Shown in pieces: positions 43,355 to 63,638 of a stretch of 64,000 nucleotides of DNA; within the stretch, counting starts at the first letter, position 1, and each line of letters begins with the position of its first letter. The position numbers and the translations under genes are program-made. Below the pieces are notes generated by a model, which saw only the letters and a program-made list of their open reading frames with translations, had not been told where the DNA came from and made no database searches. Origin of the DNA: Piromyces finnis finn (taxonomy: Eukaryota > Fungi > Neocallimastigomycota); the NCBI GenBank assembly GCA_002104945.1, contig MCFH01000062.1:62001-126000 (forward strand), read 5' to 3'.

Positions 43355-44525
43355 ATTGCTCTTATATTTAAGTAAGTTTTTTTTTAATATGTCAAAAAGA
43401 AAATCTAACGGAGATACTGGATCAATTCCTATATTCGATCCTACCGTTATGCTAGGAAAGGTCACTTATGAATTGAACAATAAAAATTTCATAACGTGGC
43501 AAATGTTTATGAGGAATATTTTAAATTATTATGGTCTTGAAGATTGGGTTGATGAAAACAAAACCCCAAAGATCAAAAGTGACGAAGGAATGGATATCGA
43601 CGGAGAAGAATATCTAAAGGCACCTTTTGAAATCAATACCTACTATGATAAGAACGTAACCGAAGATGACTTAAAAACAGATAGGAATATCCAATTTTTA
43701 ATTAGGTATACTTTAGGCCCAAACTGCCAACAAGATATCCAAGATAGGTCTTTAACAAGCTACGAAATGTGGAAACTATTAGAAGACATTTATTTAGGGG
43801 ATAAAATAGAAAGAAAGAATAGGCTTATTAAGGAAACAAACTCCTTAAAATACGACCCGAAAGAAAGTTTCTCAAGATTTGTAAATAAGTTAAATTCCAA
43901 CTTTAATAAGTTAGAACAACTAAATGTGAAAATAGATGATGAAGAAAAAATTGGTTTACTGTATCAAGCCTTACCAGAAAAATATAGGAAAGTCACAGTC
44001 CTTAAGCATGAAGACTGGGAAGAATGCAAAAAGGACACAGCAAGAATGATAGATAAGATGAACAAATTTGATCCGAAAGAGAAATCTGAAACCTTCGGAA
44101 TTAGACATATCTTTAGTGTTGAAGGTAGTTACAAAGGTGATAAAAGAAAGGAAAGTACTAAATACTACCGCAAAAAACAAAGTAATAATCATAATAAAAA
44201 TACAAATAAAGGAAAAGAAAAGTCCAATGAAGAAAGAAATTGGAATAACAAAAATAAACAAAACATTACATGTTATTTTTGTCATCAAAAAGGACATACT
44301 GTAAAACAATGTCGTATTCAAAAAGAACTTTCAGAAGAAGTTACAAGAAGGCTAAGAAAAGAGAAAAATAAAGGCAAGGAAGCATTTTTAGCAACAGGTG
44401 AAACAGTAAATAAACAAACCACTGAAGACTTTGAACCAGAAGTTGGATATCAAGATTTGTTTACAGTTGATTACAATACATTATTTGACAATAACAATGA
44501 TGAATGTAATAATAAATCATGCAAT

Positions 44526-45129
44526 TGTAAAGTCGACACAGAAAGAATAGATTAGGATATCTATTCTATTACAATAACACTAAATTTAAAATAAAAATAA
44601 AAAATTGTTTTATTAAAAATATCTTTTATTATAATAGAATTTTAATAATAACAATTACATCGATAAAATGATGAAAAATATCTTCTATTTATATTTTTCC
44701 TAAATACATTTATATTATATTATAACTATTTATTTCTTATATATTATTATTTAAAATCTACACTAAAATCTTAATTATTAATAAATATTTAAACTATAAC
44801 TATTTTTAGTAAAATACAATTGGCAATTCAAATTAAGTACTATTCAATTTGAATATGTGCCCATGTATTATTGATATATTAATCATTTATTATTTATCTA
44901 TTTCTATAAAAAAACAATACTAAAACTAGGGATTTAAATTGAGAATATTAATTTACTTGTTAAACATTAAAAATAAATTAATAATTTATTTTGTTTTAAA
45001 CTTTAATTATTAATAAATAAATTATGTCTCATTTTCTTTTTCTGAATATAATTTGTGTAACTTAAACAATAATACTTGTGGCTTAAGTTACATTAAAGAT
45101 ATCAAACAGAGGCGTTTGATATCTTTACA
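44526..45129 (-). mobile_element. Solo LTR X1 (604 bp, family of gypsy V), TSD GCAAT
   Basis: TGTAAAG...CTTTACA flanked by GCAAT at 44521-44525 and 45130-45134. Near-identical reverse complement of 45856-46457. Its removal restores the copia frame. Confidence 0.92.
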
Positions 45130-45855: not shown

Positions 45856-46507
45856 TGTAAAGATATCAAACGCCTCTGTTTGATATCTTTAATGTAACTT
45901 AAGCCACAAGTATTATTGTTTAAGTTACACAAATTATATTCAGAAAAAGAAAATGAGACATAATTTATTTATTAATAATTAAAGTTTAAAACAAAATAAA
46001 TTATTAATTTATTTTTAATGTTTAACAAGTAAATTAATATTCTCAATTTAAATCCCTAGTTTTAGTATTGTTTTTTATAGAAATAGATAAATAATAAATG
46101 ATTAATATATCAATAATACATGGGCACATATTCAAATTGAATAGTACTTAATTTGAATTGCCAATTGTATTTTACTAAAAATAGTTATAGTTTAAATATT
46201 TATTAATAATTAAGATTTTAGTGTAGATTTTAAATAATAATATATAAGAAATAAATAGTTATAATATAATATAAATGTATTTAGGAAAAATATAAATAGA
46301 AGATATTTTTCATCATTTTATCGATGTAATTGTTATTATTAAAATTCTATTATAATAAAAGATATTTTTAATAAAACAATTTTTATTTTTATTTTAAATT
46401 TAGTGTTATTGTAATAGAATAGATATCCTAATCTATTCTTTCTGTGTCGACTTTACAATAACAATTACCTAACTACTTCAAGAGTACGTTAGGATATCTA
46501 CTACTGT

Positions 46508-46580
46508 CAGAAGAAGAATTTATAGAAGAACTTGGTTGCTACCATAGAAGAAGAATATACCGAAGTACTTGGTTGCTACC
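46508..46580 (+). repeat. 37-bp tandem repeats in the V leader (continue at 52934-52983 beyond Y)
   Basis: cagaagaagaatttatagaagaacttggttgctacca-type units, about 3.4 copies once Y is removed. Confidence 0.85.
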
Positions 46581-49500
46581 TGTAAAAGTATAAAATTTAA
46601 AACAGATTTTATACTTAAAACAAAACAATTTTTATTAACACAAAAATAAAAAAATAAAACATTAAATTTTTATTTTAAAAAAAAAACATTTTTATTTAAA
46701 CTCTTAAAAATATTATTAACTATATAATAGTTAATAATTAAAAAATTGAAAATAACAATTACATCGATTTAACAAATAAAAATTACATGTATTTATATTT
46801 TTTCATAATTATATTCTAATATATTATTCTATTTAAATAAACATATATTTAATATAAAATAAACAAAACTAATTTAATTAAATAATAAAATAACAGAACT
46901 AAACTAAACTAATTCATTATACTTTTAATTCAATTTGAGTAAACTCAAAATTGAATAAAGCCCATGTATTTTCTATAAATTAATTTAATATTATCAATAC
47001 TATTCTTAATATATTTCCTATTGAAATATAAATAAATCTATTTTTAAAACTAAGTTAAAATTATTAAACTATTCTAAATTTAAATAAAAAAGTATAATCT
47101 ATTCTAAAATTAAATAAAAAGTATTTGAAAAATATTTTAATTATTTAAAATATTTGAAATATTTAAATTTAATTAAAATTCTTTTATTCCTTAAACTTAA
47201 ATATTTATCTTAATTTAAATTTAACGGAATTATTATAAAATAATTTATTATTAAATTATTCCATAAAATTTACTAAAAAATTTTATAATCAGTTTTACTA
47301 AATATTAATTTATTATTTAATAATTAATAATTAATTATTAAATAATCTAAAGATATATATTATATCTTTACAATCTCGCCCTTTAAGTCGAGCTCCTGCG
47401 AGATTATTTTCTTGAAGAAATTTAAATAACAAATGGTTACTACTTTTTCTAAATCATAACATTGTTAAAAAAATATATAAGTATTTAATTTATTTATACT
47501 CTTATTATCATTCTTGTTACTTATACATAATTCTAATAATTTATCTAAAACTTAATCATCAAGAATCCATTTGTTTTTATATTCAGATTATGGTTATTTA
47601 TAAATTGTTTTCTATTAACATTTTTATTTAAGTATTCAAAACAAAACATTTACTTAAGTTTCAAATTTTTATTTATTCAATTCTTCTTGATCATCATGAC
47701 TTTTATAATCTTCTTATGCATGATTAAAATTCTATTTTACAATTTTAATACTTTTTATTAATACTTATAATAATCTGTTCAACTTTCTTTGATTTATTAG
47801 CTGAAGAAATTTCAATATTAAATTTTAAATTAAATCCATAGTTTGTATAAAATTGAAATTGATTGATTGATTACAATAAAATATTATAAGTAGATTCCAA
47901 TATAACAATCAATTCGATTTTATTAACCAACGGAGATATTGGAACAATATCTCGTTCACCCTCTCATTTAAATGAAAAGTCTGTGATAAAATTTATATAA
48001 AATATATCAAACAGACAATTCTAAAATTATAAAGAAAATAGCATTTAAAGAGTATTAAATGTTTTTTATTATTGTACAAACTTTAAACCAAGTGGAACTT
48101 ATTTTTTTTTAAAGGTTATTATTAAGCAAATAAATATAACAAAATTCTTAGTAATAAAATATTTGTAAAAAAAATTAACATTCATTAATAATAATGGAAA
48201 AACATCATTCAATAATTATATTAACTATACCACTATTTTTTTTTCATCTTATTATTAAATAAACAAAAGTGGTATCAAGTCATCAAGTAAATACTATAAT
48301 TTAATTAACAAATTTATCATTTTTAGACGTTTTTAAAATACTTTTAGCATATTTATAATTCTCTTTTATTTTATAATTTATCAATATATGGTATTATAAA
48401 ATTATTTCTTTTTTAAAAATTTAACAATGAATTCATAAATTTAAATATCATCAATAAAACATCACAGAATTGATATAAACATATACATAATGTTGTACTA
48501 AATATTATTAATTATAAAGTAATTAAAATACTTCATCAAAAGCATCACTTAAAATATTAAAATAGAGCTGATACATTTTTGAATAAAAGGTATGATAATA
48601 AATTAAAAATGCCATATAAAGATTAAAGCAATTTTAAATTCATCACTTTATTTAATTCTTACTAAGCTATTGATATATTTAAATTTAGTTTAAAAACATA
48701 TTTTACTCCATTTATCTTATTTATTGATTAAAGGAATATATGAATTTCAATAATTATATCATTTAATTTCCTACAATCAATATATAGTAATTATAGTTAT
48801 CAATCTCATTATACTTCCATTAAAAAGAATTGTATAAAGATTAAAATCTTTTTTTTTTTCCTTTATAAAGTTCGTTTTATTAAGTACATAAAAACTATTC
48901 ATTTATTAAAAACTCTTATAATTATTATACATATTACATTAATTTATATTTGTTTTATTCATTATATTTATTACATTTATCATATTTATTAACTTATTAT
49001 ATTTATTAATTTATTCTATTTATTACATTTATCATATTTATTAACTTATTCTATTTATTACTTTATTCTATTTATTACATTTTATTATATTTTTTTTTCA
49101 TTTGTTGTATTTATTAATTCTATTTTTTTTTTTTAATTATTATTAATACTAACTATTATACTATCAAGTTGTTACTATTACTAAAACTATTCCTCATTAA
49201 TTTCTATTATAGCTATTTCTAATTCTACAATACTAATACATTACAATCATATTTATTTTTTAAATTACATTTATTATAATCAGAATTATTTAGATAACAT
49301 TATTTTCCATAGGACGAATGTACTTAACATTTTGTTATAATCCTCCACAATTCAGTAATTCATTAAGTTTCTTTTTAAAACATTGGAATTTTCAAATTTA
49401 TTATTTCATTACTGAATTGTTCTTCTTTCTTGTTTCTTTTTATTTTCATTTTATTCTTTATAAAATCCAGATAAATGAAATTAAGAACAGATCCAGAATA

Positions 49501-50070
49501 GATTAATTTTCTAGCTCTGATTTCACTACCATCATATTATTAAGAATAAAAAATATTACACTCATTTCTTATTATATATTTATTTAACTTTATAATTATT
49601 CAATCAAAACTACTATATTAATTTATTCAAGTTATTTGAATCTTTTAAATATAAAACTTACTTCTTAATAAAAATATAAACTTATTAACTAGATATACAA
49701 TAACTTCTTTATAAAAAATTCTTTATTTAATTAATTTATTTTAATTTATTAAATATAAAAAACATAATTTATTTAACAACTAAATTTGTAAAACCTCCTC
49801 ATATTGAATTCAAATTATTTTAATTATTTATTCTTAATCATTTGTTTAATAAATTATTTAATAAACTATTACAATCAAATTATCTTAATTTACTAAATAT
49901 AAAAATAATTTTTTTTTTTTAATAAATGTATAACTTTTTAAATAACTAAATTTGTATTGACTTTTGTTGATAAATTCAAATCAAATTAAAAATGCTTTAA
50001 ATTTATATTCTAATTATTAAGAATTTTCTATTTAGTCAAATATTCAGTTATATAAAATACACCTTTATAT

Positions 50071-51574
50071 AAAAGAAGTCAACTCCATCCTATCAACTGG
50101 TGTCAGCGAATTCTTTATAAAGTATAAAACATGTTATTACAATGAAATTAAATTATTTTTTTTTTTAAGCTCGTTTTCGTATTACTTCATAATATTTTAA
50201 TATATTATTTAATAAACTTCTTAATTGTATTTATCTAATTTAATTAATAATATATAATCCTTGAATATATTTTATTTATTTAGTTAGTTAATCGAATTTA
50301 TATTGTATCTTCATATTAAAGAAGTCGACCTGACTCTATCCTTTAAAGAAAAGGTGTCATCGAATTATTTATTTAGTATAAAATTAAATTATTTTAAAAG
50401 TAATTTTAAATATCAAATCATTTTCTAACTTCATTAAATTAAATTATATATTTCAAATTTTCAAGTTAAATTAATTTATAGTATTTTCAATTTAATTTAT
50501 TATATACTATTTCCCAAAAAGATGTCGATCTGACTCTGTCCTCTAAAAAGGTGTCATCGAAATCTTATTATAATAAAGAATAATTTATTTATTTAACTAA
50601 CTTTACACATTTATTACTTTTACTTTTATTGTAAAATTTTAATTCATTTCTTAATTTTAATTTATTATATACTATATCTAAAAGATGTCGCTCAGACTCT
50701 ATCCTATCAAAAGGTGTCGAGCGAGGTCTTTTATGTATATAATAAATTCATTTCAAATTTACTTATTATATAATCAAATTTTAATTTGTTTTAATTATAT
50801 ATTCAATTTAATTTATTATATACAATATCTAAAGATGTCGCTCAGACTCTATCCTATCAAAAGGTGTCGAGCGAGGTCTTTTATAGTATATAATAAATTT
50901 ATTTCAATAAGATAACTTATTCCTCAACTACTTTTAATTAATAAATATCAAAATTTTAATTTTCATATTTCTCAATGTATTTTAAATAAATCTAAAATTA
51001 TTATATACTACGTCTAAAAGATGTCGCTCAGACTCTATCCTATCAAAAGGTGTCGAGCGAGGTCTTTTATAATATATAATAAATATATTTCAATAAAATA
51101 ACTTTTTCCAATAGGTGATATTTACATTTTAATTCACTTATTTCTCAATTTCATTTTAATTAATAAATATCAAAATTTTAATTTTCATACAATATATTTT
51201 AAATAATTCTATAATTATTATATACCATGTTTAAAAGATGTCGCTCAGACTCTATCCTATCAAACGGTGTCGAGCGAGGTCTTTTAAGTATATAATAAGT
51301 TCATTTCAAAATAACAATTAATAATTCATTCAAATAAGTGAAATCAACATACTAATTCACTTATTTCTCAATATATTTAAATAATTTTAAAATTTTATTA
51401 ACTTTTTCTTAATTTTCTTTCTTTTTAAATAAGTTTTAATTTTCTTACTTTGCAATTAATTTTTTGATTTAATTTACTCTTTTAATTGTATATATCCAAT
51501 TTAATTTATAATATACTATGTATAAAAGATGTCGCTCAGACTCTATCCTATCAAACGGTGTCGAGCGAGTTCTT
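50071..51574. repeat. Array of 8 copies of a ~50-bp hairpin-forming motif with AT-rich spacers
   Basis: aaagatgtcgctcagactctatcctatcaaa(a/c)ggtgtcgagcgag(g/t)tcttt at 50681, 50831, 51017, 51234 and 51525. Diverged copies at ~50071, 50318 and 50517. Confidence 0.9.
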
Positions 51575-51704
51575 TTTATAGTATATTATAATTAAATTTA
51601 ATTTTAAAAGAGTTTCATCAATTTAAAAACAAGAGTATTTCATAAATATATTTCTATTAGTATTACAGATAGATTTTATATATAAAGATTTCATTGTTCC
51701 ATAC

Positions 51705-52050
51705 AGTAGAGTTACACTTATTCCAATTCCAATATAAAAAGGAAAGTTTCACAGAGTAGAAGTTCCACAAGCAAAGTTCCACGAGATTCGTTCAAAAGAA
51801 TTCCACGAAGGAAGGATTTCACAAGGTAGTGTTCCACAAGTAGGTAAAAATTCCACAATTATAGTTCCACAAAGTAGTGTTTCACAAAATTTATTTAGAA
51901 TTTCACAAAGTAGGGTAACACAAAATTAATGTTACACTGACAGAAGTTACACCATAAATAGTTCCACAAGGTAGGCTTCTCAAGTAGACAAAAAAAAAAT
52001 TTCCGAAGAGAAAAAATTTCCGAAAAGTTCCAAATTTTCTACGGTAGCAA
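51705..52050. repeat. Cluster of short degenerate (G/A)TT(C/T)CAC(A/G) repeats in the Y leader
   Basis: More than a dozen gttccac/tttcac/attccac words spaced roughly 13-25 bp apart, just inside the Y PBS. Confidence 0.75.
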
Positions 52051-53128
52051 TTCCCAATGTTGTAACTTCAGAAAATAAAAATTGTTTTATTATTAAATAT
52101 AAAACGTGTTTTTTAATAAGAAAAGGTAATTGTTATTGTAAAAGTATAAAATTTAAAACAGATTTTATACTTAAAACAAAACAATTTTTATTAACACAAA
52201 AATAAAAAAATAAAACATTAAATTTTTATTTTAAAAAAAAAACATTTTTATTTAAACTCTTAAAAATATTATTAACTATATAATAGTTAATAATTAAAAA
52301 ATTGAAAATAACAATTACATCGATTTAACAAATAAAAATTACATGTATTTATATTTTTTCATAATTATATTCTAATATATTATTCTATTTAAATAAACAT
52401 ATATTTAATATAAAATAAACAAAACTAATTTAATTAAATAATAAAATAACAGAACTAAACTAAACTAATTCATTATACTTTTAATTCAATTTGAGTAAAC
52501 TCAAAATTGAATAAAGCCCATGTATTTTCTATAAATTAATTTAATATTATCAATACTATTCTTAATATATTTCCTATTGAAATATAAATAAATCTATTTT
52601 TAAAACTAAGTTAAAATTATTAAACTATTCTAAATTTAAATAAAAAAGTATAATCTATTCTAAAATTAAATAAAAAGTATTTGAAAAATATTTTAATTAT
52701 TTAAAATATTTGAAATATTTAAATTTAATTAAAATTCTTTTATTCCTTAAACTTAAATATTTATCTTAATTTAAATTTAACGGAATTATTATAAAATAAT
52801 TTATTATTAAATTATTCCATAAAATTTACTAAAAAATTTTATAATCAGTTTTACTAAATATTAATTTATTATTTAATAATTAATAATTAATTATTAAATA
52901 ATCTAAAGATATATATTATATCTTTACACTACCACAGAAGAAGAATTTATAGAAGAACTTGGTTGCTACCATAGAAGAAGAATTACTGAAACAATTATAG
53001 GTTAAACTCTGTTGCTGCCCTTGTTAAAGGAATTCTACCGAAGGAATCAATATATAGATACAAAACTTGTTCGACATTGCTTTGCAGAACGCGTTTGAAT
53101 AACTTTTGTATTTAAATAGATTGTATTA

Positions 53129-53265: not shown

Positions 53266-55461
53266 ATGGGTGATAGGACTGTGGATGTTTCTGGGAATTC
53301 GGGGAACATTATTAATGCTCCACCGATATTTTCTGGTAAACAAAGAGAATTGGATGGATTTTTAACCAGAGTTGAGTTGGTATTTCGTACTCGACCGACA
53401 CTGTATAATACAGATCGAGTCAAGGTCGACTTCGTTATATCATACTTCTCTGGTAAACCTTTGGAATGGGCTTCAGTGTTGATGAAGAATAATAGTGGGG
53501 TTTTAAATCATTATGATGAATTTGTAGATAGGTTGAAGGCTAATTTTGGCAGTTATAGATACGATACCGTTGTAGCTAACGGAAAATTAGATAATCTTCG
53601 CCAAAGGAAACTTGGTCAGGTATTAGATTACATTACCGAGTTTCAACGTATTAGCCAAAATTCAAGCTTTAATGATAGCGCAAAAATCTACATGTTTCTG
53701 AAAGGTTTATTACCACCACTTAGGGAGAAGTTGGCTTTCATTGAATCAAACCCAACTTCAATTGAACAATTGATTTCTTCAACTATTTTAGTTGAAGATA
53801 TGATGAAAAGAAATTCTCTAAGTGAATTTTATTTTAATGGTAGAAGGGCTAACGATCCTATGGATGTGGATGTATTTAGAATTAGTAGAGAAAATAAACG
53901 CAAAAGGTATGTGAATATCCAAGGATCAAGTAAAAATTACAATGAAAACATAGACAATTTTGAAGAAGAAAAGAAAAAGGGGTTATGTTTTCTTTGTAAA
54001 CAACCGGGACATTTAAAGTTTAATTGTCCTAATAGAGTAAAGCCCAGAAAAGTGTTAAGAATTGTTAAAGAAAGGACTCCAAAAATTGTTAATCCAAAAA
54101 TTTACAAAGTTGGAGTCAAGGGAGTGAAAAGTGATTTAAACCTTGTGGACTTTTACTTGAGTACCAATGAAGTTTCGGAAGTTAAAATTAAGGTTTTAAT
54201 TGATTCCGGTTCTGAATTAAATTTCATTAATCCAAGTCTTGCTGAAGAACTTGGTATTAATTTGGAAAAAGTGGAACCATTCCGTGTTTCAGGTGTTAGT
54301 GATGGAGTTGTTAGTGTTTGGGAAAGGACTGAGAAGTGCATGCTCCGCTGCAAAAATCACTTCGAAGTAATTCAACTTTATGGATTACAAGTCCCCGGTG
54401 TTGATGTTATTCTTGGTTTGCCGTGGATAAAGAAGCATAATCCAAATGCTTTCTACGACTCTAAGAAAATCGCTTTTAGTTCTGGTTATTGTGCCAGACA
54501 TTGTAATAAAGGCAAAAGAAAGAGAAAACCAAGAAAGAAGTCAAAGAATGATCAGTTAGATCATGATGTTCTCGACCGAAGCTTGACCAAAAAGCCGAAA
54601 GTAGATCCCTCTGTCCCAAACAATGAAGAAAAAGAATATGTTAAAGGCCGCCTTGTTAGAACCATCAATGATGAAGATGATAGCAATGATGAATATATTA
54701 GTTTTAATAAAAAAGTTAAATGTATTGTAACAAAAATTAATGAAACATGTAATAATGATAACGAATCATGTAGTAATAATAATAATAATGGAAAAGATAT
54801 TAATAAAGATAAATTGGTCGCCGTACCAACCCAATATTTAGAATTTAGTGAAGTGTTTAATGAAAAAAATTGTGAAGTGTTACCTCCTCATAGACCTTAT
54901 GATTGTGAAATCAAACTTAAAGATGATTCGACTTTATTTTATGGACCTTTGTATCCATTAACTGAAGTTGAAAGAGAGGAACTTAAAAAATATATTGATG
55001 ATAATTTAAATAAAGGTTTTATTAGGAAATCATCGTCTCCTGCTGGTGCCCCAATTTTATTTGTTAAAAAGAAGGATGGCTCCCTAAGACTTTGTATCGA
55101 TTATAGAAAGTTGAATGATATTACCATTCGTAATTCATATCCTTTACCTTTAATTAGTGACCTTTTGGATAGGGTGAAAAATGCTAAGATTTTTACTAAA
55201 TTAGACCTTAAATCCGCTTATAATCTTGTTCGTATTAAAGAAGGTGATGAATACAAAACGGCTTTTCGTACTAGATATGGACATTTTGAATATCTGGTTA
55301 TGCCTTTTGGATTAAAGAATGCACCTGCAACTTTTCAACACTTCATTAACGATGTCCTTAGTGACTATTTAGACGATTTTGTTATCTCATATATTGATGA
55401 TATTCTTATTTATTCTAATAATATCGAAGAACATCATGAGCATGTTAAAAAGGTACTTAAG
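53266..55461 (+). CDS. Gypsy V gag-protease-RT (N-terminal part), interrupted by solo LTR W
   Basis: Retrotransposon gag (PPIFSG...YFSGKPLEW), [20 protein letters not shown], protease [36 protein letters not shown]. The first ATG is taken as the start; the ORF track starts at TTG 53224. Confidence 0.92.
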
Positions 55462-55807
55462 TGTAAAGAAATGTGTCTTTAACAATAAAACAAATTATAA
55501 TATTTACTAAATAACTTAGTAATATTAACACTTTAAAATATTCTGTAAATTATTAATTTATAAAAATATCCTTAAAAACACATAGAATTTAACTTAATAA
55601 GTTAGTGTTTAATAATATAATTATTTATTAATAAAATCTCGATTCTTTAAAATATTTGGGAAAATTCACTCGTATTTATACTAAAAATTTTTTAAATTAA
55701 TTTATAAAATTTTTTCAACTTAAAATTCTTAACCAATCAATAATCTTCATATAAAATAAAATTTAAAAATAAAATAAAATAAAATAAAATTATAATTTTT
55801 TTAAAAT

Positions 55808-55880
55808 AGTATCTATGAGGTCTCGAACTAGTGTCATTCAGACTCAAAGTCTTAGCTACTAACCACTAAGACAATTTAGT
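55808..55880 (-). promoter_or_regulatory. Degenerate tRNA-Gln(TTG)-like module with Pol III box A and box B (copies at 62830-62902 and 63541-63613)
   Basis: Minus strand reads actaaat-TGTCTTAGTGG-ttagtagc-taaga-ctTTGag-tctga-atgacacta-GTTCGAGAC-c. Box A is 10/11 to TRGCNNAGYGG, box B fits GTTCRANNC, spacing is tRNA-like and the anticodon stem pairs 4/5. Acceptor, D and T stems do not pair. Confidence 0.62.
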
Positions 55881-55893
55881 TATTTCTAGTATT

Positions 55894-58800
55894 TGTAAGA
55901 AATATTTGTGGCCATAAGTTTGCCCACAAATATTTCAATTGAAACCATATATTCTGGTCACCATTTATTGGCCAAATATATGCATAACCATATATTAATG
56001 GTTATTAATTAAATAGGAAGTCTATTTGCTTTACCCAATCAAGTGGTAAAGAAAATAAACTCATATAGTTAAATAGTATAGTCAAAACTAACGTTAAATA
56101 CTTTAGCGTTAGTATTAAAGTAAATTAATAGCTATAATAATAATTAATGTATATAATTATAACTAATAAATAAAAGATAATAATTATAATAATTATTTAA
56201 GTAAATAATATTTCATATTAATATTTATCGTATTATATTTATTTTTGTGTTATAATATTTATTTTACTTCTTTTATTATTTTTTATAAAACTTTATTTAG
56301 TTATTAACTCGTATAGAGAGGTAATAACTAACTTAATTAACTTGTTATATTTAACTTATTAACTAACATATATAAAAACCTTTTACAATACTAACGCTTT
56401 ATAGTTAGTTCTTACGTTAGCTTAGTTTTAATTAGGTTAGTGTTATTAAAAATTCTTAAAAAACATATTTTATTTTATTTAAATTATTGTTTAATAATAA
56501 TTATTTACAATATTTTATATAATATTCAAATATTATATTTAAAAGAAGTAAATTTATTATTAAAAATAATTATTTTTTAATAGTTTAGCATTAAAAATTC
56601 ATTATTTGTAAATTTTAAAATTCATTATAACCATATTTTATATAATAAATTCTTTAATTTATTAAAAGAATTTATTTTCGAATTAGAAATGAAAAACGCA
56701 GGTAAGTCGCCTAACCCTCGGGGTGTCCATAAATTGGACACAAAAACATCATTCGTAAGGGACGGGACCCGTCCTGACGCGGCGAGCGCGGATGGCATGG
56801 ATGGTGTAGAGGGAATGTCACGGGTTCGAACCCCGGTGCTTCTCGAAAGCACTGAGGTCGAATCTAATCAGAATTTACAGGTTCAACAGGGGGATTCTAT
56901 GCCCACCCCTGTTGATCCTTCTTTCTTTTTTACTAATAATAGTGAGGTAAACCCAATGCAACACATTGAAGTTCTTCTTAATAGATGGGTTTCGGAAATA
57001 TCTAGCCAGTTTGCTAGTATGGGAAACCGTCTGGGTGCTATGGAAGAACAACTTCGGGGTATTGAGGTTTACAAGAGCGAGATAAACGATGCTCTTCAGC
57101 AAAAATTTGTTGAAGTGGATCAAAGGTTGGAAGCAAATGAGTCAGCTATCCAAGTTAGCTTGGAAGAGCTGCATGCTGTGGAAAATGCCTTTACCGCAGA
57201 ACATGAGGAAAGGTTACAAGACCACCAGCAAGTGCTAAACAACCAAGAAACGTTGTACCGTCAATCTAGTGCCTTTGTCTCTTATAAAAAAGAGCTTGAA
57301 GAAGAGATGGCCAGATTGAGGGAGCAACGAAACGCTCTAGAAGAAAGAGAAAAATTGTTCGAGGCTAAAGTCGAAGCCATGAACAGAAGAGCTGAAGCCA
57401 GAGCTCATGAAAGAACATCCTATCAAACCGGTGGTATGGGTAATCCTCATGGTGCTGGAACTAGTAGCAGCACCAACCCTACGGAATATTCCGAGGATGG
57501 GGACGTGAAGATGTTCGATTGGCGAGTACATAGGTATGAAGAAAAAGTGCCTATGTTTGATAATAATGGGATAGACTTAGAGGGTTTTCAAGAGAAGTGC
57601 TTACGTCATTTCAAACGTTACCCATATGACTATGGTAACGACGAAAAGGCAAAGGTTAGCTTCATTGAAGATCATCTAGGTGGGAAAGTATTGAGATGGT
57701 ATAGACTTAGAGAGAGGATGTTGCAGCGTAGGAATCCCGATGCTGAAAGACTATTCCTCCACCTTCAAGATAAGTTTCCACCAGAGTCTCCCCATGAACT
57801 CTGCAAGTCAAAGTTGCTTAAGCTCACACATGAGTGGGGAAAAGCATACGACTATTTGGAAGAGTTCAATGAATTGACGGAAACACTTGGGCTTCCTGAA
57901 AATGTTAGGAGACAGGTGTTAATACAACAGGTCAGGCCTTCTGTCAGGGAAGCGTTCTATGATATCCCTGAACCGGAACGTACGCTGGAAACATTAAGTG
58001 AAGTCTTGCTAAAGTGCGATGACCACCAAGCAGTCTTCCGTAATGAAACCATAGAAAAGTACGACAAAAGAGACCGCCAGACCACTATTATGGCCTTGTT
58101 GGATATCACAGACCCATGTAGACCATCTAGATGGGCTGAGTTAAAGCAGAAGAACAACAAGCCAAATAATAAGCCTAAAGTTGAGCAGACCAACACTCAG
58201 GCTTACGTAAAAAACAATAACGGTGCCAAAGAACGTCGTGAATCCTTAAATAAGTCAAGCTTTAGAAGAAGTTCTAGCTTCCAACCAAAGCAAGGACCTT
58301 CTAGTATGGGAAATAACCCATTACCTAAGGCTATGGCAAGTCAAACGACGGTCAATAACAGCTACTACAGTCAGAACCAACTAGTAGCTGAAATAAATGC
58401 AAGAAGCAACCCTCGAGATATAAAAAGGGTAGAAGTCTTGTATGATACTGGTTCCACCACAAACCTCATTCACCCAAATTTAGCAAAGAAGCTCGGGTTA
58501 AAGGTAGTGGACAAACCAGCCATATTCAGAACTGTGAATGGTGATATCGAGTTAAAGCAGTTCTCAGATGACTTGCAGTTGAAGTTATGGTTAACTCCAT
58601 CTGGCGAACAAGAAGCTAAGCCATACTGCTTCAACACAAGTTGTCACCTATCCGACAATATGCCGGAGATGATCATTGTGGGACTGGGCTTCATGGATGA
58701 GCACTTTATCTACAGAGGTTATGATAAAGATGCACAAGTGAGGTACTTCGTAGTAGATAATGATAAGGATAAAGGACACACCAACAGTTATGGTGTAAAT

Positions 58801-61800
58801 GACGGCAATATCTACTACTGTACTCAATTAAGTCCCATAACTACAGTTACTAATGCAAAAGCAAGAAGGCCTCTGGTAACTGTAACCGCAGAAAACATCG
58901 AAGCCGAAATCGTGGGTAATGGTAGCCACAAGGCTACAAAAGGAACCAGGAACGGAAGTTCCGGAGGGTTGGCATCGAGTTCCAACTCAGAGAAAACTTG
59001 TGTTTCAGTAGGGTTGGTACAGAGTGCTAACTTAGAGAAAAAATGTGTTTCCGGAGGGTTGACACGAAGTCCTGACTTAGAGAAAAACCCCGTTTCAGTA
59101 GGGTTGGTACAGAGTGTTGACTTAGAGAAAAATCACATTTACGTAGGGTTGGTACAGGAAGAAAACTTAAACGAAAATCAACCTACACCTGAAGAAATCG
59201 TGGAGAAGTACTACCACAATTTCAAAGAAGCATTTAATGAAGAAATAGCTAACCAGCTACCAGAACACCGTCCTTACGACTGTAAGATCGACCTGGAGCC
59301 GGATGCTAGTCTTCATAAAGGGCCTATATATCCCTTCAATCCAGAAGAGGAAAAAGCACTGAAGGAATATATAGAGGAAAACCTGGCAAAGGGCTTCATC
59401 AGGAAGTCAGAGAGTCCTGCAGGTTATCCTGTGTTATTCGTGCCCAAAAAGAGTGGTGAAAGACGATTATGTACTGATTATAGGCGTCTTAATAAGGTAA
59501 CAGTGCGTAACTCCTTTCCCTTACCACTCATCAGTCAAGTGTTTGAGGCTATGAAAGGCGCGACTATCTTCTCCAAGTTGGATTTGAAGTCTGCCTACAA
59601 CCTCGTGCGTATTCGTGAAGGTGACGAATACAAGACGGCATTCTCAACCAAGTTTGGGCATTATGAATATCTAGTGATGCCATTTGGGTTGACTAATGCT
59701 CCTGCCACGTTCCAAGGGTTCATTAATACGGTGCTGGCAGAAGAAATCAACGACTGCTGTCAAGTGTACTTGGATGATATCATCATCTACTCCAAGTCAC
59801 TTGAAGAGCATGTAGGGCATGTAAAAAGAGTCCTACAAAAGCTAATAGATAATCGTCTAGTAGCTAAGTTAGCGAAGTGTGAGTTCCACAAGGAAGAACT
59901 TGCATTCCTGGGTCATGTAGTTGGAAAATATGGTATTAAAACCGACCCAGAAAAGTTAAAAGCTGTAGCAAGTTGGCCACAACCAACCAACATTAAAGAA
60001 CTACAGTCATTCCTCGGATTCTGCAACTATTATAGGAAGTTTATAAAGGACTTCTCTAAGATAGCAAGGCCGTTATATGCGATGACGTCCAAAAAGGTAC
60101 AATTCCTGTGGAATGAAGAACGCATCCAGGCGTTCGAGAAGTTAAAAGAAATGCTGTTGTCTCCACCAGTATTAGCATATCCTGACCATGACCGTCAGTT
60201 TATAGTGGAGTGCGACGCTAGTAACTACGCAGTGGGTGGTGTATTATCACAACTAGGCGATGACAATGAACTACACCCTGTGTATTACTATTCCAAGAAA
60301 CTTACGAAAGCAGAAATCAACTACTCCATCACGGAAAAGGAGTTGTTGGCTATTAGGAATGCTTTCATCGAGTGGCGACACCTGTTAATGGGTGCGAAAC
60401 ATAAGGTCCTAGTATATAGTGACCATAGGAATCTCCTGTTCGCCACAAAACCACAGTTGTTGACAGCAAGACAGGCAAGATGGCAAGAGCTGTTTGCTGC
60501 ATACGACTTCGAAATAATATATCGGCCAGGAAAAATGAATGGTAGAGCCGATATCCTATCAAGAATGGTATCTCCAGAACAGGTACAACTGGAGATGGAA
60601 AAAGCTAGCCTCCTTCGACCTGAACAGGTAAAAGAATTTCCACCCGTGGAAGAAGAGTGCTATGCGGTGTTAGAAGTAAGCTTTGTGGGAGAACTGAAAC
60701 AAGCCTACAACACGGATGAGCTTGCTAGGGAAATTAGAGATGGTCTTGACGCAAAAAGAGGCCACAAGCTCATCAAAAAGAAGTGGTTGATGGTTAATGG
60801 GTTGATTGTTAGAAAGGATGCACCAGAACGTACATATGTACCAAAGGTGTTAAGGGAAACAATCATAAAACTTAACCACGATAGTGAAACAGCAGGTCAT
60901 TTGGGAAAAGATAAAACTTATGACCTGATAGCCAGAAACTACTACTGGCCAAAAATGAAGGATGACATTGCGGGATATATTAAAGCTTGTACCATATGTT
61001 GTACCCAAAAGGACAACAGACACAAGCCGTACGGTAGCGCTGCTAGGGTAAAAGTTGCAGACTTACCTTGGCAAGAAGTAGAAATCGACTTCCTGACGGA
61101 CCTACCTATTAAGGAACGTAGAAAACCAGGTAGTAGTCCCTCAGAACCCCCAGAAGTCACTAGAAGAGGTTGTATCATGGTTTGTAGCGATAAGTTAACC
61201 AAAATGATACACTTAGTGGGATTTAGGAATATGCCTACTGCTAAAGAAACAGCCTTAGCATACTTACAACATGTATTCAAGTTACATGGTTGTCCCAAAT
61301 CGGTTACTACGGATCGTGGTGTCCAGTTCACTAGTAAGTTGTGGAAGGACATTATGGGGTTCTTTGGCGTAGAAGTAAACCTTGCTACTACTGGCCATCA
61401 TGAAACAGTTGGTCAGGTAGAACGCAATAACTCCTACGTAAGTATGTACCTTTGATGCTTTGTGAAGACCTTTGATGACGACGAATGGTTGAAGTACTTG
61501 TACTTAGCTGAGTTCTGCTATAATAATGCAGTACACAGTTCTACTAAGCAGTCCCCATTCCTAGCCTTGTATAACTACCAGGTACATATGAACCCTCAAG
61601 ACTCAGAACTTGTCCACTCACTTGGTGAAGCTCCTATATTAGATAGCTTCGCTCACAACTTAGGTAACTTAAAGCACATGCTGGACATATCAAGAACACG
61701 GTTCTTAGACCACTTGGACCATAGAAGAGAACTTAACTACCCTAAAATTAGGCTCATGGATTTGGTGTGGTTAAGAAAACCAGAAAATTACAACCCTCTT

Positions 61801-62699
61801 CCCTTCTACAAGCTACAAGCAAGAAAGTACGGTCCCTTCAAGGTTATTGGAATTGATGAAAGCAAGCTTAACTACCGGTTGGATATCAGCAAGTCACCTT
61901 TCCCCAATGTCTACCCTGTGTTTCATATCAGTGAACTTGAACCCTACCATAACAAACCTGAAGAACTAACACCTGCACCAGTGGGCTACCAGAAAATTAT
62001 CAAAATCATGAATGCCAGAAGAAAGAAGGATAACTACCAATACTTAGCTACCTTTAGTGACTTTAGACAAGAGTGGGTTGATGCTGATATCATTGACAAG
62101 AACTCCCACTATGATAAGCTACTCAAGGAATTTCAAGATAAATGCTACCAGGAATTCATGGTTAGTGTCCAAAACCCTGCCTAGGTTTTCTCCTCAGGGG
62201 GGCATTGTAAGAAATATTTGTGGCCATAAGTTTGCCCACAAATATTTCAATTGAAACCATATATTCTGGTCACCATTTATTGGCCAAATATATGCATAAC
62301 CATATATTAATGGTTATTAATTAAATAGGAAGTCTATTTGCTTTACCCAATCAAGTGGTAAAGAAAATAAACTCATATAGTTAAATAGTATAGTCAAAAC
62401 TAACGTTAAATACTTTAGCGTTAGTATTAAAGTAAATTAATAGCTATAATAATAATTAATGTATATAATTATAACTAATAAATAAAAGATAATAATTATA
62501 ATAATTATTTAAGTAAATAATATTTCATATTAATATTTATCGTATTATATTTATTTTTGTGTTATAATATTTATTTTACTTCTTTTATTATTTTTTATAA
62601 AACTTTATTTAGTTATTAACTCGTATAGAGAGGTAATAACTAACTTAATTAACTTGTTATATTTAACTTATTAACTAACATATATAAAAACCTTTTACA
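55894..62699 (+). mobile_element. Complete Ty3/gypsy chromovirus-like element Z (6806 bp): 494-bp LTRs 55894-56387 and 62206-62699, TSD GTATT
   Basis: LTRs identical as read. GTATT at 55889-55893 and 62700-62704. PBS ATACTAACGCT at 56388-56398; PPT AGGGGGGCAT at 62196-62205. Confidence 0.96.
56689..62184 (+). CDS. Z single-frame gag-PR-RT-RH-IN-chromodomain polyprotein with one in-frame TGA (61453-61455)
   Basis: LYDTGSTTNLI (protease), YLDDII (RT), ECDASNYAVGG (RNase H), H..H..CTIC and D..D..E (integrase; IDF, TDRG, VERNN). YL*CFV where YLRCFV is typical. C-terminal chromodomain-like KIIKIMNARRKKDNYQYLATF...EWV. Confidence 0.93.
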
Positions 62700-62917
62700 G
62701 TATTCATTACATTAAGAAACTACTTGAAAATAATCTTTATGTTAAAATTCTTAACCAATCAATAATCTTCATATAAAATAAAATTTAAAAATAAAATAAA
62801 ATAAAATAAAATTATAATTTTTTTAAAATAGTATCTATGAGGTCTCGAACTAGTGTCATTCAGACTCAAAGTCTTAGCTACTAACCACTAAGACAATTTA
62901 GTTATTTCTAGTATTCA

Positions 62918-63412
62918 TGTAAGAAATATTTGTGGCCATAAGTTTGCCCACAAATATTTCAATTGAAACCATATATTCTGGTCACCATTTATTGGCCAAA
63001 TATATGCATAACCATATATTAATGGTTATTAATTAAATAGGAAGTTTATTTGCTTTACCCAATCAAGTGGTAAAGAAAATAAACTCATATAGTTAAATAG
63101 TATAGTCAAAACCAACGTTAAATACTTTAGCGTTAGTATTAAAGTAAATTAATAACTATAATAATAATTAATGTAGATAATTATAATTAATAAATAAAAG
63201 ATATAATTAAAATATAATTATTTAAGTAAAAGTTATTTCATAAAATATTTATACATTTGTTTATATTTATTTTAGTGTTATAATATTTATTTTCTTTCTT
63301 TTATTATTTTTTATAAAACTTTATTTAGTTATTAACTCGTATAGAGAGGTAATAACTAACTTAATTAACTAATTAATAACCTATTAACTAATATTATAAG
63401 AAACCTTTTACA
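62918..63412 (+). mobile_element. Solo LTR Z' (495 bp, diverged relative of the Z LTR), TSD ATTCA
   Basis: TGTAAG...TTTACA flanked by ATTCA at 62913-62917 and 63413-63417. Several substitutions versus the Z LTRs (gaagtttatt/gaagtctatt, aaccaacg/aactaacg, different 3' end). Confidence 0.92.
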
Positions 63413-63638
63413 ATTCATTACATTAAGAAACTACTTGAAAATAATCTTTATGTTAAAATTCTTAACCAATCAATAATCTTCATATAAAATAAAATTTAAA
63501 AATAAAATAAAATAAAATAAAATTATAATTTTTTTAAAATAGTATCTATGAGGTCTCGAACTAGTGTCATTCAGACTCAAAGTCTTAGCTACTAACCACT
63601 AAGACAATTTAGTTATTTCTAGTATTCATTACATTAAG

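Follow-up and report, generated by a model that had tools for sequence, protein, structure and literature searches.

Organization of the locus

The window, i.e. the whole 64-kb stretch of DNA that was analysed, contains a non-coding, non-autonomous LTR retrotransposon (element Y) inserted in the leader of a Ty3/gypsy element (element V, gag-pol start at 53266), to which it lies antisense. Element Y is bounded by a 5-bp target-site duplication (CTACC, at 46576-46580 and 52929-52933) and by two direct LTRs of 792 bp each, which are 100% identical and have TG..CA termini. The LTR of Y starts with the 11 nt TGTAAAGATAT, the same as in the LTR of V. Furthermore, the self-primer GTAATTGTTAT is found inside the LTRs of both elements (V: 46326; Y: 52318 and 46762), and ATAACAATTAC directly follows the LTR at 46458 in V and at 52136 in Y. 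An ORF scan of Y detected no intact gag or pol (longest ORF 76 aa), and look-up of the spurious 76-aa ORF of the array gave no recorded match. The features of Y are as follows.

46581..52928, minus strand: element Y, non-coding, non-autonomous LTR retrotransposon, 6348 bp (LTRs, target-site duplication, ORF scan)
52137..52928, minus strand: 5' LTR in Y's own orientation, containing the self-primer GTAATTGTTAT at 52318-52308
52125..52136, minus strand: primer-binding site (PBS) ATAACAATTACC, identical to the PBS of V at 46460 and complement of the LTR-internal GTAATTGTTAT
51690..51985, minus strand: short YTTGTGRAA leader repeats, between the PBS and the first hairpin
49456..49533, minus strand: protease pseudogene remnant (tblastn with P0019 residues 329-352, E 4e-4)
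48624..48787, minus strand: weak reverse-transcriptase remnant (E 0.06-0.07 with several queries; collinear with the other remnants)
47754..47986, minus strand: integrase pseudogene remnant (tblastn with the integrase of relative L007, E 3.6e-11, and with L004 pol, E 2e-8)
47373..47384, minus strand: polypurine tract (PPT) AAAGGGCGAGAT, touching the 3' LTR and read as the reverse complement of atctcgcccttt
46581..47372, minus strand: 3' LTR (LTR comparison)

Element Y is read on the minus strand because of the position of the PBS, the self-primer within the LTRs, the PPT and the collinear minus-strand pseudogene remnants. The RNA motif is therefore the reverse complement of the motif visible on the plus strand. 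An earlier note on this DNA had described the motif on the wrong strand, and what it called a TCCT loop reads GGAUAGAG in the RNA. In its own orientation Y is arranged as LTR, PBS, YUUGUGRAA repeats, hairpins c8 to c1, pseudo-PR/RT/IN, PPT and LTR, with the hairpin array occupying the expected place of gag. Taken together, Y is a recently mobile, gene-less LTR retrotransposon.

Element Y was examined directly at this one locus and further copies were examined via contig pieces. Pieces of the array were present in contigs of four sequencing runs (three of them designated RNA by guess only), and the element is highly repeated. In run X3, which is DNA-like, the summed word depth of the Y LTR (52137-52600) was 10-50x that of the internal part (47526-52100), suggesting many solo LTRs or LTRs common to other elements.

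The remainder of the window is likewise rich in retroelement sequence. Two V LTR copies (44524-45129 and 45856-46459) are 99.7% identical, inverted and 726 bp apart, and the left copy truncates the end of a copia-type gag ORF (43356-44555). A chromovirus, Z (ORF 56689-61455, 42% GC in a genome of 16-22%), interrupts the reverse transcriptase of V, and extra tandem LTR copies occur after Z; the segments concerned in this arrangement are 55720-56389, 62205-62699, 62742-63414 and 63453-63626. Within the Z polyprotein ORF, four 45-nt tandem repeats at 58959-59183 form an in-frame 15-aa repeat.

Eight hairpin modules in element Y

Eight modules lie within 50038-51616, with plus-strand core starts at 50072, 50318, 50518, 50681, 50831, 51017, 51234 and 51525 and spacings of 246, 200, 163, 150, 186, 217 and 291 nt. 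A scan with the 39-nt core yielded 5 occurrences at one mismatch or fewer, compared with 0.00 expected (100 shuffles). A covariance model built from the eight modules of Y alone (R1) was run on the 64-kb window and recovered exactly these eight (72-130 bits, E 1e-13 to 1e-27), with no further R1 matches above noise. These results confirm the recurring GC-richer modules reported in the earlier note, which had also proposed building a covariance model from all genomic copies. The hairpins, from first to last in the RNA, are listed below.

51490..51616, minus strand: hairpin c8, first in the RNA and, of Y's copies, nearest to the single hairpin of L007
51199..51323, minus strand: hairpin c7 (model matches)
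50982..51107, minus strand: hairpin c6 (model matches)
50797..50921, minus strand: hairpin c5 (model matches, fold)
50646..50770, minus strand: hairpin c4 (model matches)
50481..50605, minus strand: hairpin c3, diverged, with stem UCGAU/AUCGA; distal stem decayed
50284..50408, minus strand: hairpin c2, diverged; distal stem gone
50038..50157, minus strand: hairpin c1, most diverged, with a 5-nt stem deletion at this locus

Minimum-free-energy folds contained the AAAGA/TCTTT, TCGCTC/GAGCGA and GAC/GTC stems that had been named from the sequence, and the TCGAT/ATCGA stem of the copy at 50518 proved to be a true double-sided change (C-G to A-U). In c4-c8 the stem runs on into an AT-rich distal stem of 14-20 bp, giving hairpins of ~95-125 nt with energies of -28 to -35 kcal/mol and, for the two modules of this group that were tested, folding z scores of -5.9 and -6.4. 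The conserved core spans ~65 nt within each ~95-125 nt hairpin. The distal stem is absent from the diverged c1-c3; these three copies are decaying, so maintenance does not extend to all eight. In runs X3 and X4 the contigs contain a G and CCTG at 50080/50081 that c1 lacks at this locus, so the c1 stem (GUCGACCUGAC, plus strand) is more complete elsewhere in the genome.

Within c4-c8 the cores differ at 0-1 of 39 nt, whereas the spacers, which are related to one another, share 79-93% identity at aligned positions and contain large indels. The earlier note had named absent covariation, together with a core no more conserved than recent unequal crossing-over would predict, as the outcome that would refute it; the core is better conserved than the spacers, and covariation (see below) is strong. 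The same comparison speaks against a neutral satellite-like tandem repeat, in which units are homogenised whole. Such a repeat is also disfavoured by the comparison with L007, whose hairpin core is 91% identical to that of c8 (48 of 53 positions) while the flanks, over 150 nt upstream and 110 nt downstream, show no more identity than shuffled sequence. Furthermore, Y has its own compensated stem, UCGCUC/GAGCGA, versus UCGUC/GACGA in L007. The GC of the genome is 15-22%, and the core is GC-richer. Its retention in a background of 16-22% GC, where a neutral core should decay, argues for selection acting in the gene-less Y itself.

A single homologous hairpin in gag-encoding relatives

Relatives were found by a word search with the Gag-Pol of V in JGI, ENA and NCBI metagenome and genome data, from which 26 loci were fetched; the best named relative of V Gag-Pol was from Orpinomyces sp., which, taken with the GC of 15-22%, suggests an anaerobic gut fungus. 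Fifteen gag-encoding loci, representing 11 different core sequences, contained exactly one homologous hairpin each, always on the sense strand and 75-320 nt ahead of gag. This distribution, together with the many compensatory changes described below, bears out the proposal that the motif is an undescribed structured RNA with covariation. A single hairpin upstream of gag was matched in L005, L007-L010, L011, L012, L014-L020 and L022-L025 (R1 31-71 bits) and was confirmed with two sense-strand covariance models, R2 and R3; given the variable linker, the second model and anchor-defined positions were used. R1 scores were highest for L007-L010 (70.7 bits) and ranged from 56 down to 31 bits across L019, L020, L024, L005, L014, L011, L025, L015, L012, L018, L022/L017, L023 and L016. 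Loci lacking a hairpin match had less than 200 nt of sequence upstream of gag. In 11 of 14 relatives the hairpin folded with z scores of -2.7 to -5.5, and the distal stems were unrelated in sequence.

The only other copy in the window, recovered with R2 and R3, is diverged and lies inside the gag of V, whose product matches the PEG10/RTL/Ty3-capsid Pfam families.

53378..53443, plus strand: single diverged motif copy in V gag, codons ~38-60 (R2 36.6 bits, E 3e-7; R3 33.4 bits)

The same gag codons carry the motif in L001 (113-178), L002 (1-61) and L026 (275-340). In this V-type version the stems are UCGACC/GGUCGA and GAC/GUC and the internal loop is A / AUCGA. A compensatory change from GAC/GUC to AAC/GUU is found in L001, at synonymous sites of gag. 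A hairpin-like match in the V leader was not counted, being weak with R1 (26.5 bits) and absent with R2.

Element Y resembles L007 in its leader as well as in its hairpin. The L007 leader (1-150) contains CTTGTGGAA repeats as does Y, CUUGUGGAA repeats are common to both, and 8 of the 19 exact TTGTGRAA matches of the window fall within 51763-51969, all on the minus strand. Dense YUUGUGRAA repeats were found only in Y and L007 and not in the remaining relatives; the V leader instead has ~43-nt repeats at 46490-46580 and 52934-52990. Such leader repeats, which differ between lineages, may offer a further binding site for Gag or a host factor. The repeats and the hairpin that Y has in common with L007 indicate that Y derives from an L007-like element, c8 being the original copy; Y is thus a decayed, gene-less derivative of an L007-like member.

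Coding relatives share different features with Y, namely the PBS and LTR ends in the case of V and the leader repeats and hairpin in the case of L007. No complete helper was recovered from the same genome, and the nearest relatives, L007-L010, are without RT. In L007 (430-2971) a gag-protease of 481 aa is followed by 176 nt and then an integrase of 306 aa, with RT and RNase H missing. The same arrangement was observed in L008, L009 and L010, the contigs deriving from four different samples, and the L007-type element may itself be helper-dependent.

In summary, gag-encoding members have one hairpin, located after the PBS and before the gag start codon, and Y carries it eightfold in the place of gag. 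Besides the hairpin, Y has retained on its minus strand just the LTRs, the self-priming PBS, the PPT and the short leader repeats. The hairpin is best described as a putative cis-acting leader element of a Tf1/sushi-like Ty3/gypsy lineage found in fungi that are very AT-rich and probably of the anaerobic gut type. The Gag CX2CX4HX4C knuckle was invariant in all 15 aligned Gag sequences.

Consensus structure and covariation

On the sense strand the consensus reads UUUAC-UCGAC(C)-GNC-A-CC-[variable loop]-GG-AUAGA-GNC-(1-3 nt)-(G)GUCGA-C-UUUAC, embedded in a long distal stem that varies in sequence from lineage to lineage. Invariant or nearly invariant positions comprise UCG/CGA, C-A-CC, GG, A-N-A-G-N-G and the closing C. 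Between invariant C-G pairs lies a nearly invariant, asymmetric 1x5-nt internal loop, in which a single A is opposite AUAGA.

Covariation was examined on alignments made in different ways. In a structure-blind MAFFT alignment of 13 distinct sequences, 94.2% of cells were paired, compared with 76.1% after shuffling (0 of 500 shuffles as high) and 24-39% with slid pairing partners; 9 of 15 pairs changed on both sides, and the covariation score was 0.474 versus 0.156. Alignment of 24 sequences to R3, which leans towards the structure, gave 94.6% paired cells and a score of 0.443 versus 0.142 (0 of 500). At positions defined solely by their distance from invariant anchors, 72 of 76 cells were Watson-Crick compared with 43.7 in shuffled data, a value not reached in any of 100,000 shuffles. 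Among 19 sequences, none of which was unpaired at these positions, pair S3.2 occurred as U-A (6), A-U (10) and G-C (3), pair S3.3 as G-C (14), A-U (4) and C-G (1), and pair S2.4 as A-U (16), U-A (2) and C-G (1). When mapped on the Gag tree, at least 11 independent compensatory switches were required, the four variable pairs changing state at least 4, 4, 2 and 3 times. L016 and L005 have near-identical Gag, yet their hairpins differ at two pairs.

Neither folding energy nor G.U counts discriminated between the strands (mean fold energy -26.2 for sense versus -28.7 for antisense, p 0.07). Two more specific structural readings were considered. A kink-turn was rejected from the alignment: it has a three-nt bulge followed by tandem sheared G.A/A.G pairs, with GA needed on both strands, and the strand facing AUAGA here offers a single A, flanked by an invariant C-G pair and the CC/GG helix. 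A DIS-like dimerisation site formed by palindromic apical loops was weakly indicated, as self-complementary apical loops of at least 6 nt were present in 5 of 14 relatives versus 2.1 expected (P ~0.05 ignoring kinship) and absent from Y c4-c8 and from L007.

The motif matched no Rfam family: at gathering thresholds there was no match in the whole window or in six relatives, and at E<=10 the single match on Y was an unrelated bacterial sRNA (E 1.5), with no ribozyme family among the results. Exact-motif scans of viral and metagenome collections returned 0 matches, and a looser half-motif scan of viral contigs returned 7 loci, of which 0 fit the covariance model, consistent with chance. No literature was found on the motif or on cis RNA signals of anaerobic gut fungal mobile elements.

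Proposed function of the hairpin

The hairpin is most likely a Gag-recognition site, because a non-autonomous element keeps only what is needed in cis and the functions of the PBS, PPT and LTRs are already accounted for. LTRs, PBS and PPT would provide for transcription, priming and integration, which would leave recognition of the RNA by Gag as the main remaining cis function. A Gag-recognition signal acting in packaging, possibly with dimerisation, and multiplied by the parasitic element Y is accordingly put forward here as a proposal with about an even chance of being correct. Consistent with a packaging role, the hairpin occupies the interval from PBS to gag, or a site early within gag, in elements whose Gag has an invariant CCHC knuckle. 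Furthermore, it is a covarying RNA structure of the leader or 5' gag that has been kept eightfold in Y while the genes decayed. The region from PBS to gag or early in gag is the classical place of packaging signals (PMC4974528, PMC5454406), and unpaired purines in a stem are bound by some retroviral Gag proteins (PMC8096270). In the hairpin the unpaired purines of the A / AUAGA loop, clamped by invariant C-G pairs, would be the likely Gag contact, and where Gag is limiting, eight copies would give Y RNA the advantage over helper RNA. An alternative candidate Gag-binding site is formed by the short UUGUGGAA repeats that precede the hairpins.

A more specific version of this proposal is offered tentatively, its probability being judged somewhat short of even. 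Here the hairpin would be a discrete, sequence-specific Gag-recognition signal of the Ty3/gypsy lineage, Y would be a natural 'super-parasite' that gains encapsidation because a multimer of the signal stands in the place of gag, and V-type elements would have moved the signal into the gag frame.

Another reading is that the hairpin recruits a host factor, in the manner of a constitutive transport element (CTE), and so promotes export, stability or localisation of the RNA, with more copies leading to more cytoplasmic Y RNA. A long stem with one sequence-specific internal loop, retained in the gene-less Y, is compatible with such an element, and a benefit from copy number would likewise explain the array; multimerised CTEs perform better in vectors. 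However, the hairpin has a single asymmetric loop, whereas the loops of a CTE show two-fold symmetry, fungal retrotransposon RNAs without introns are not known to require an export element, and the position by gag, downstream of the PBS, is the one typical of packaging signals. An export or stability role is therefore considered unlikely, at perhaps a chance in the order of one among several.

Somewhat less probable again is that the hairpin works only in gag-encoding elements, in control of gag translation or as a switch between translation and packaging. The array of Y would then have no function: it would have arisen when reverse transcriptase jumped templates at a strong hairpin, and its units would still be alike because they are young and undergo unequal crossing-over. 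Tandem repeats are common in the untranslated parts of LTR retrotransposons (PMC7004042), c1-c3 are decaying and the spacers are mutually related, all of which speak for a by-product. Against it, the cores of c4-c8 show 0-1 differences in 39 nt, compared with 7-21% and large indels in their spacers, the stem of Y carries its own compensation relative to L007, and the GC-rich core persists in its AT-rich background.

A role in reverse transcription, where the structure would act as a pause site or an aid to strand transfer, is doubtful, as is a hairpin that forms in minus-strand cDNA or in an antisense transcript. The antisense fold is slightly more stable on average and the lineage already uses an unusual self-priming that depends on RNA structure. 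However, in Y the hairpin is ~550 nt from the PBS, the position of the hairpin is tied to gag and falls inside gag in V-type elements, and none of the known steps of reverse transcription calls for an element of this kind. As folding energy does not favour the sense strand, an antisense RNA or minus-strand cDNA structure as the acting form keeps some, albeit low, probability.

A self-cleaving ribozyme array or a protein-binding array in double-stranded DNA, both raised in the earlier note, is very improbable. Its sole support is the even spacing and a palindromic stem resembling GTCGAC. A new ribozyme class has no support, as no ribozyme family matched in the Rfam search at E<=10 and the conserved part is a simple stem with a small internal loop (1+5 nt unpaired). 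A DNA site is contradicted by stem pairs that keep complementarity although the bases themselves vary (one pair occurs as U-A, A-U and G-C, and three stem positions each show three different Watson-Crick pairs), a pattern that marks a single-stranded fold.

Comparison with known systems

With Gag recognition as the preferred reading, the hairpin can be set beside several known signals and elements. An MPMV-type CTE is a long imperfect hairpin with sequence-specific internal loops whose activity in vectors depends on copy number; the hairpin of Y has one asymmetric loop versus two symmetric ones and shares no sequence likeness with it. With the self-priming Tf1/sushi elements, V and Y share a PBS that is complementary to an LTR-internal 11-mer and not tRNA-based, and Gag matches the PEG10/RTL/Ty3-capsid Pfam families. 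The known self-priming structure uses the first ~90 nt of the RNA, whereas the Y hairpin is separate and lies hundreds of nt downstream. Tandem repeats within LTR retrotransposons are also known to seed satellites (PMC7004042). The Y array is similar to these in lying in the non-coding part of an LTR element and in its variable unit length, but its unit is a structurally selected hairpin that is single-copy in coding relatives.

Some retroviruses have well-characterised, discrete signals for packaging or recognition. For Ty3-type elements discrete packaging signals are poorly defined, none being known for Ty3 itself, and for Ty1 they are broadly delimited (PMC4974528). In Ty1 the packaging region, which includes the 5' TIPIRT domain, was defined with mini-Ty1 donors (PMC4974528, PMC5454406), and in MMTV a single-stranded purine loop is bound by Gag (PMC8096270). 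The hairpin is comparable to retroviral Psi and Ty leader structures in lying downstream of the PBS and upstream of gag, or shortly after the start of gag, in being a conserved stem-loop with unpaired purines and in its retention in trans-mobilised elements. It differs from them in having no sequence or Rfam likeness and in that its role here is a proposed one. It is also smaller, a discrete core of ~65 nt with a 1x5 internal loop compared with the 300-580-nt multi-domain region of Ty1. Three things single out this ~65-nt motif, namely its strong covariation, its constant position ahead of gag and its retention and multiplication in a gene-less parasite, and it represents a small, testable candidate signal. 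The motif could be used in RNA family libraries and for annotation of the element lineage.

The LARD/TRIM-type elements of plants are non-autonomous LTR retroelements that depend on a helper for mobilisation. Mouse VL30, which is likewise non-coding and non-autonomous, is packaged by MLV particles (PMC9450689, PMC4997597). Element Y is similar to both in its intact LTRs, PBS and PPT, its lack of genes, its recent mobility and its cis signals common to coding relatives, and it documents active helper-parasite dynamics among the retrotransposons of anaerobic gut fungi. Trans-mobilised non-coding LTR elements and leader RNA signals are already known, whereas an eightfold hairpin array in the place of gag is, to our knowledge, undescribed, and we know of no described case of an eightfold tandem array of a presumed recognition hairpin. 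Unlike VL30 and LARD/TRIM elements, Y combines this eight-unit hairpin array with collinear PR, RT and IN pseudogene remnants.
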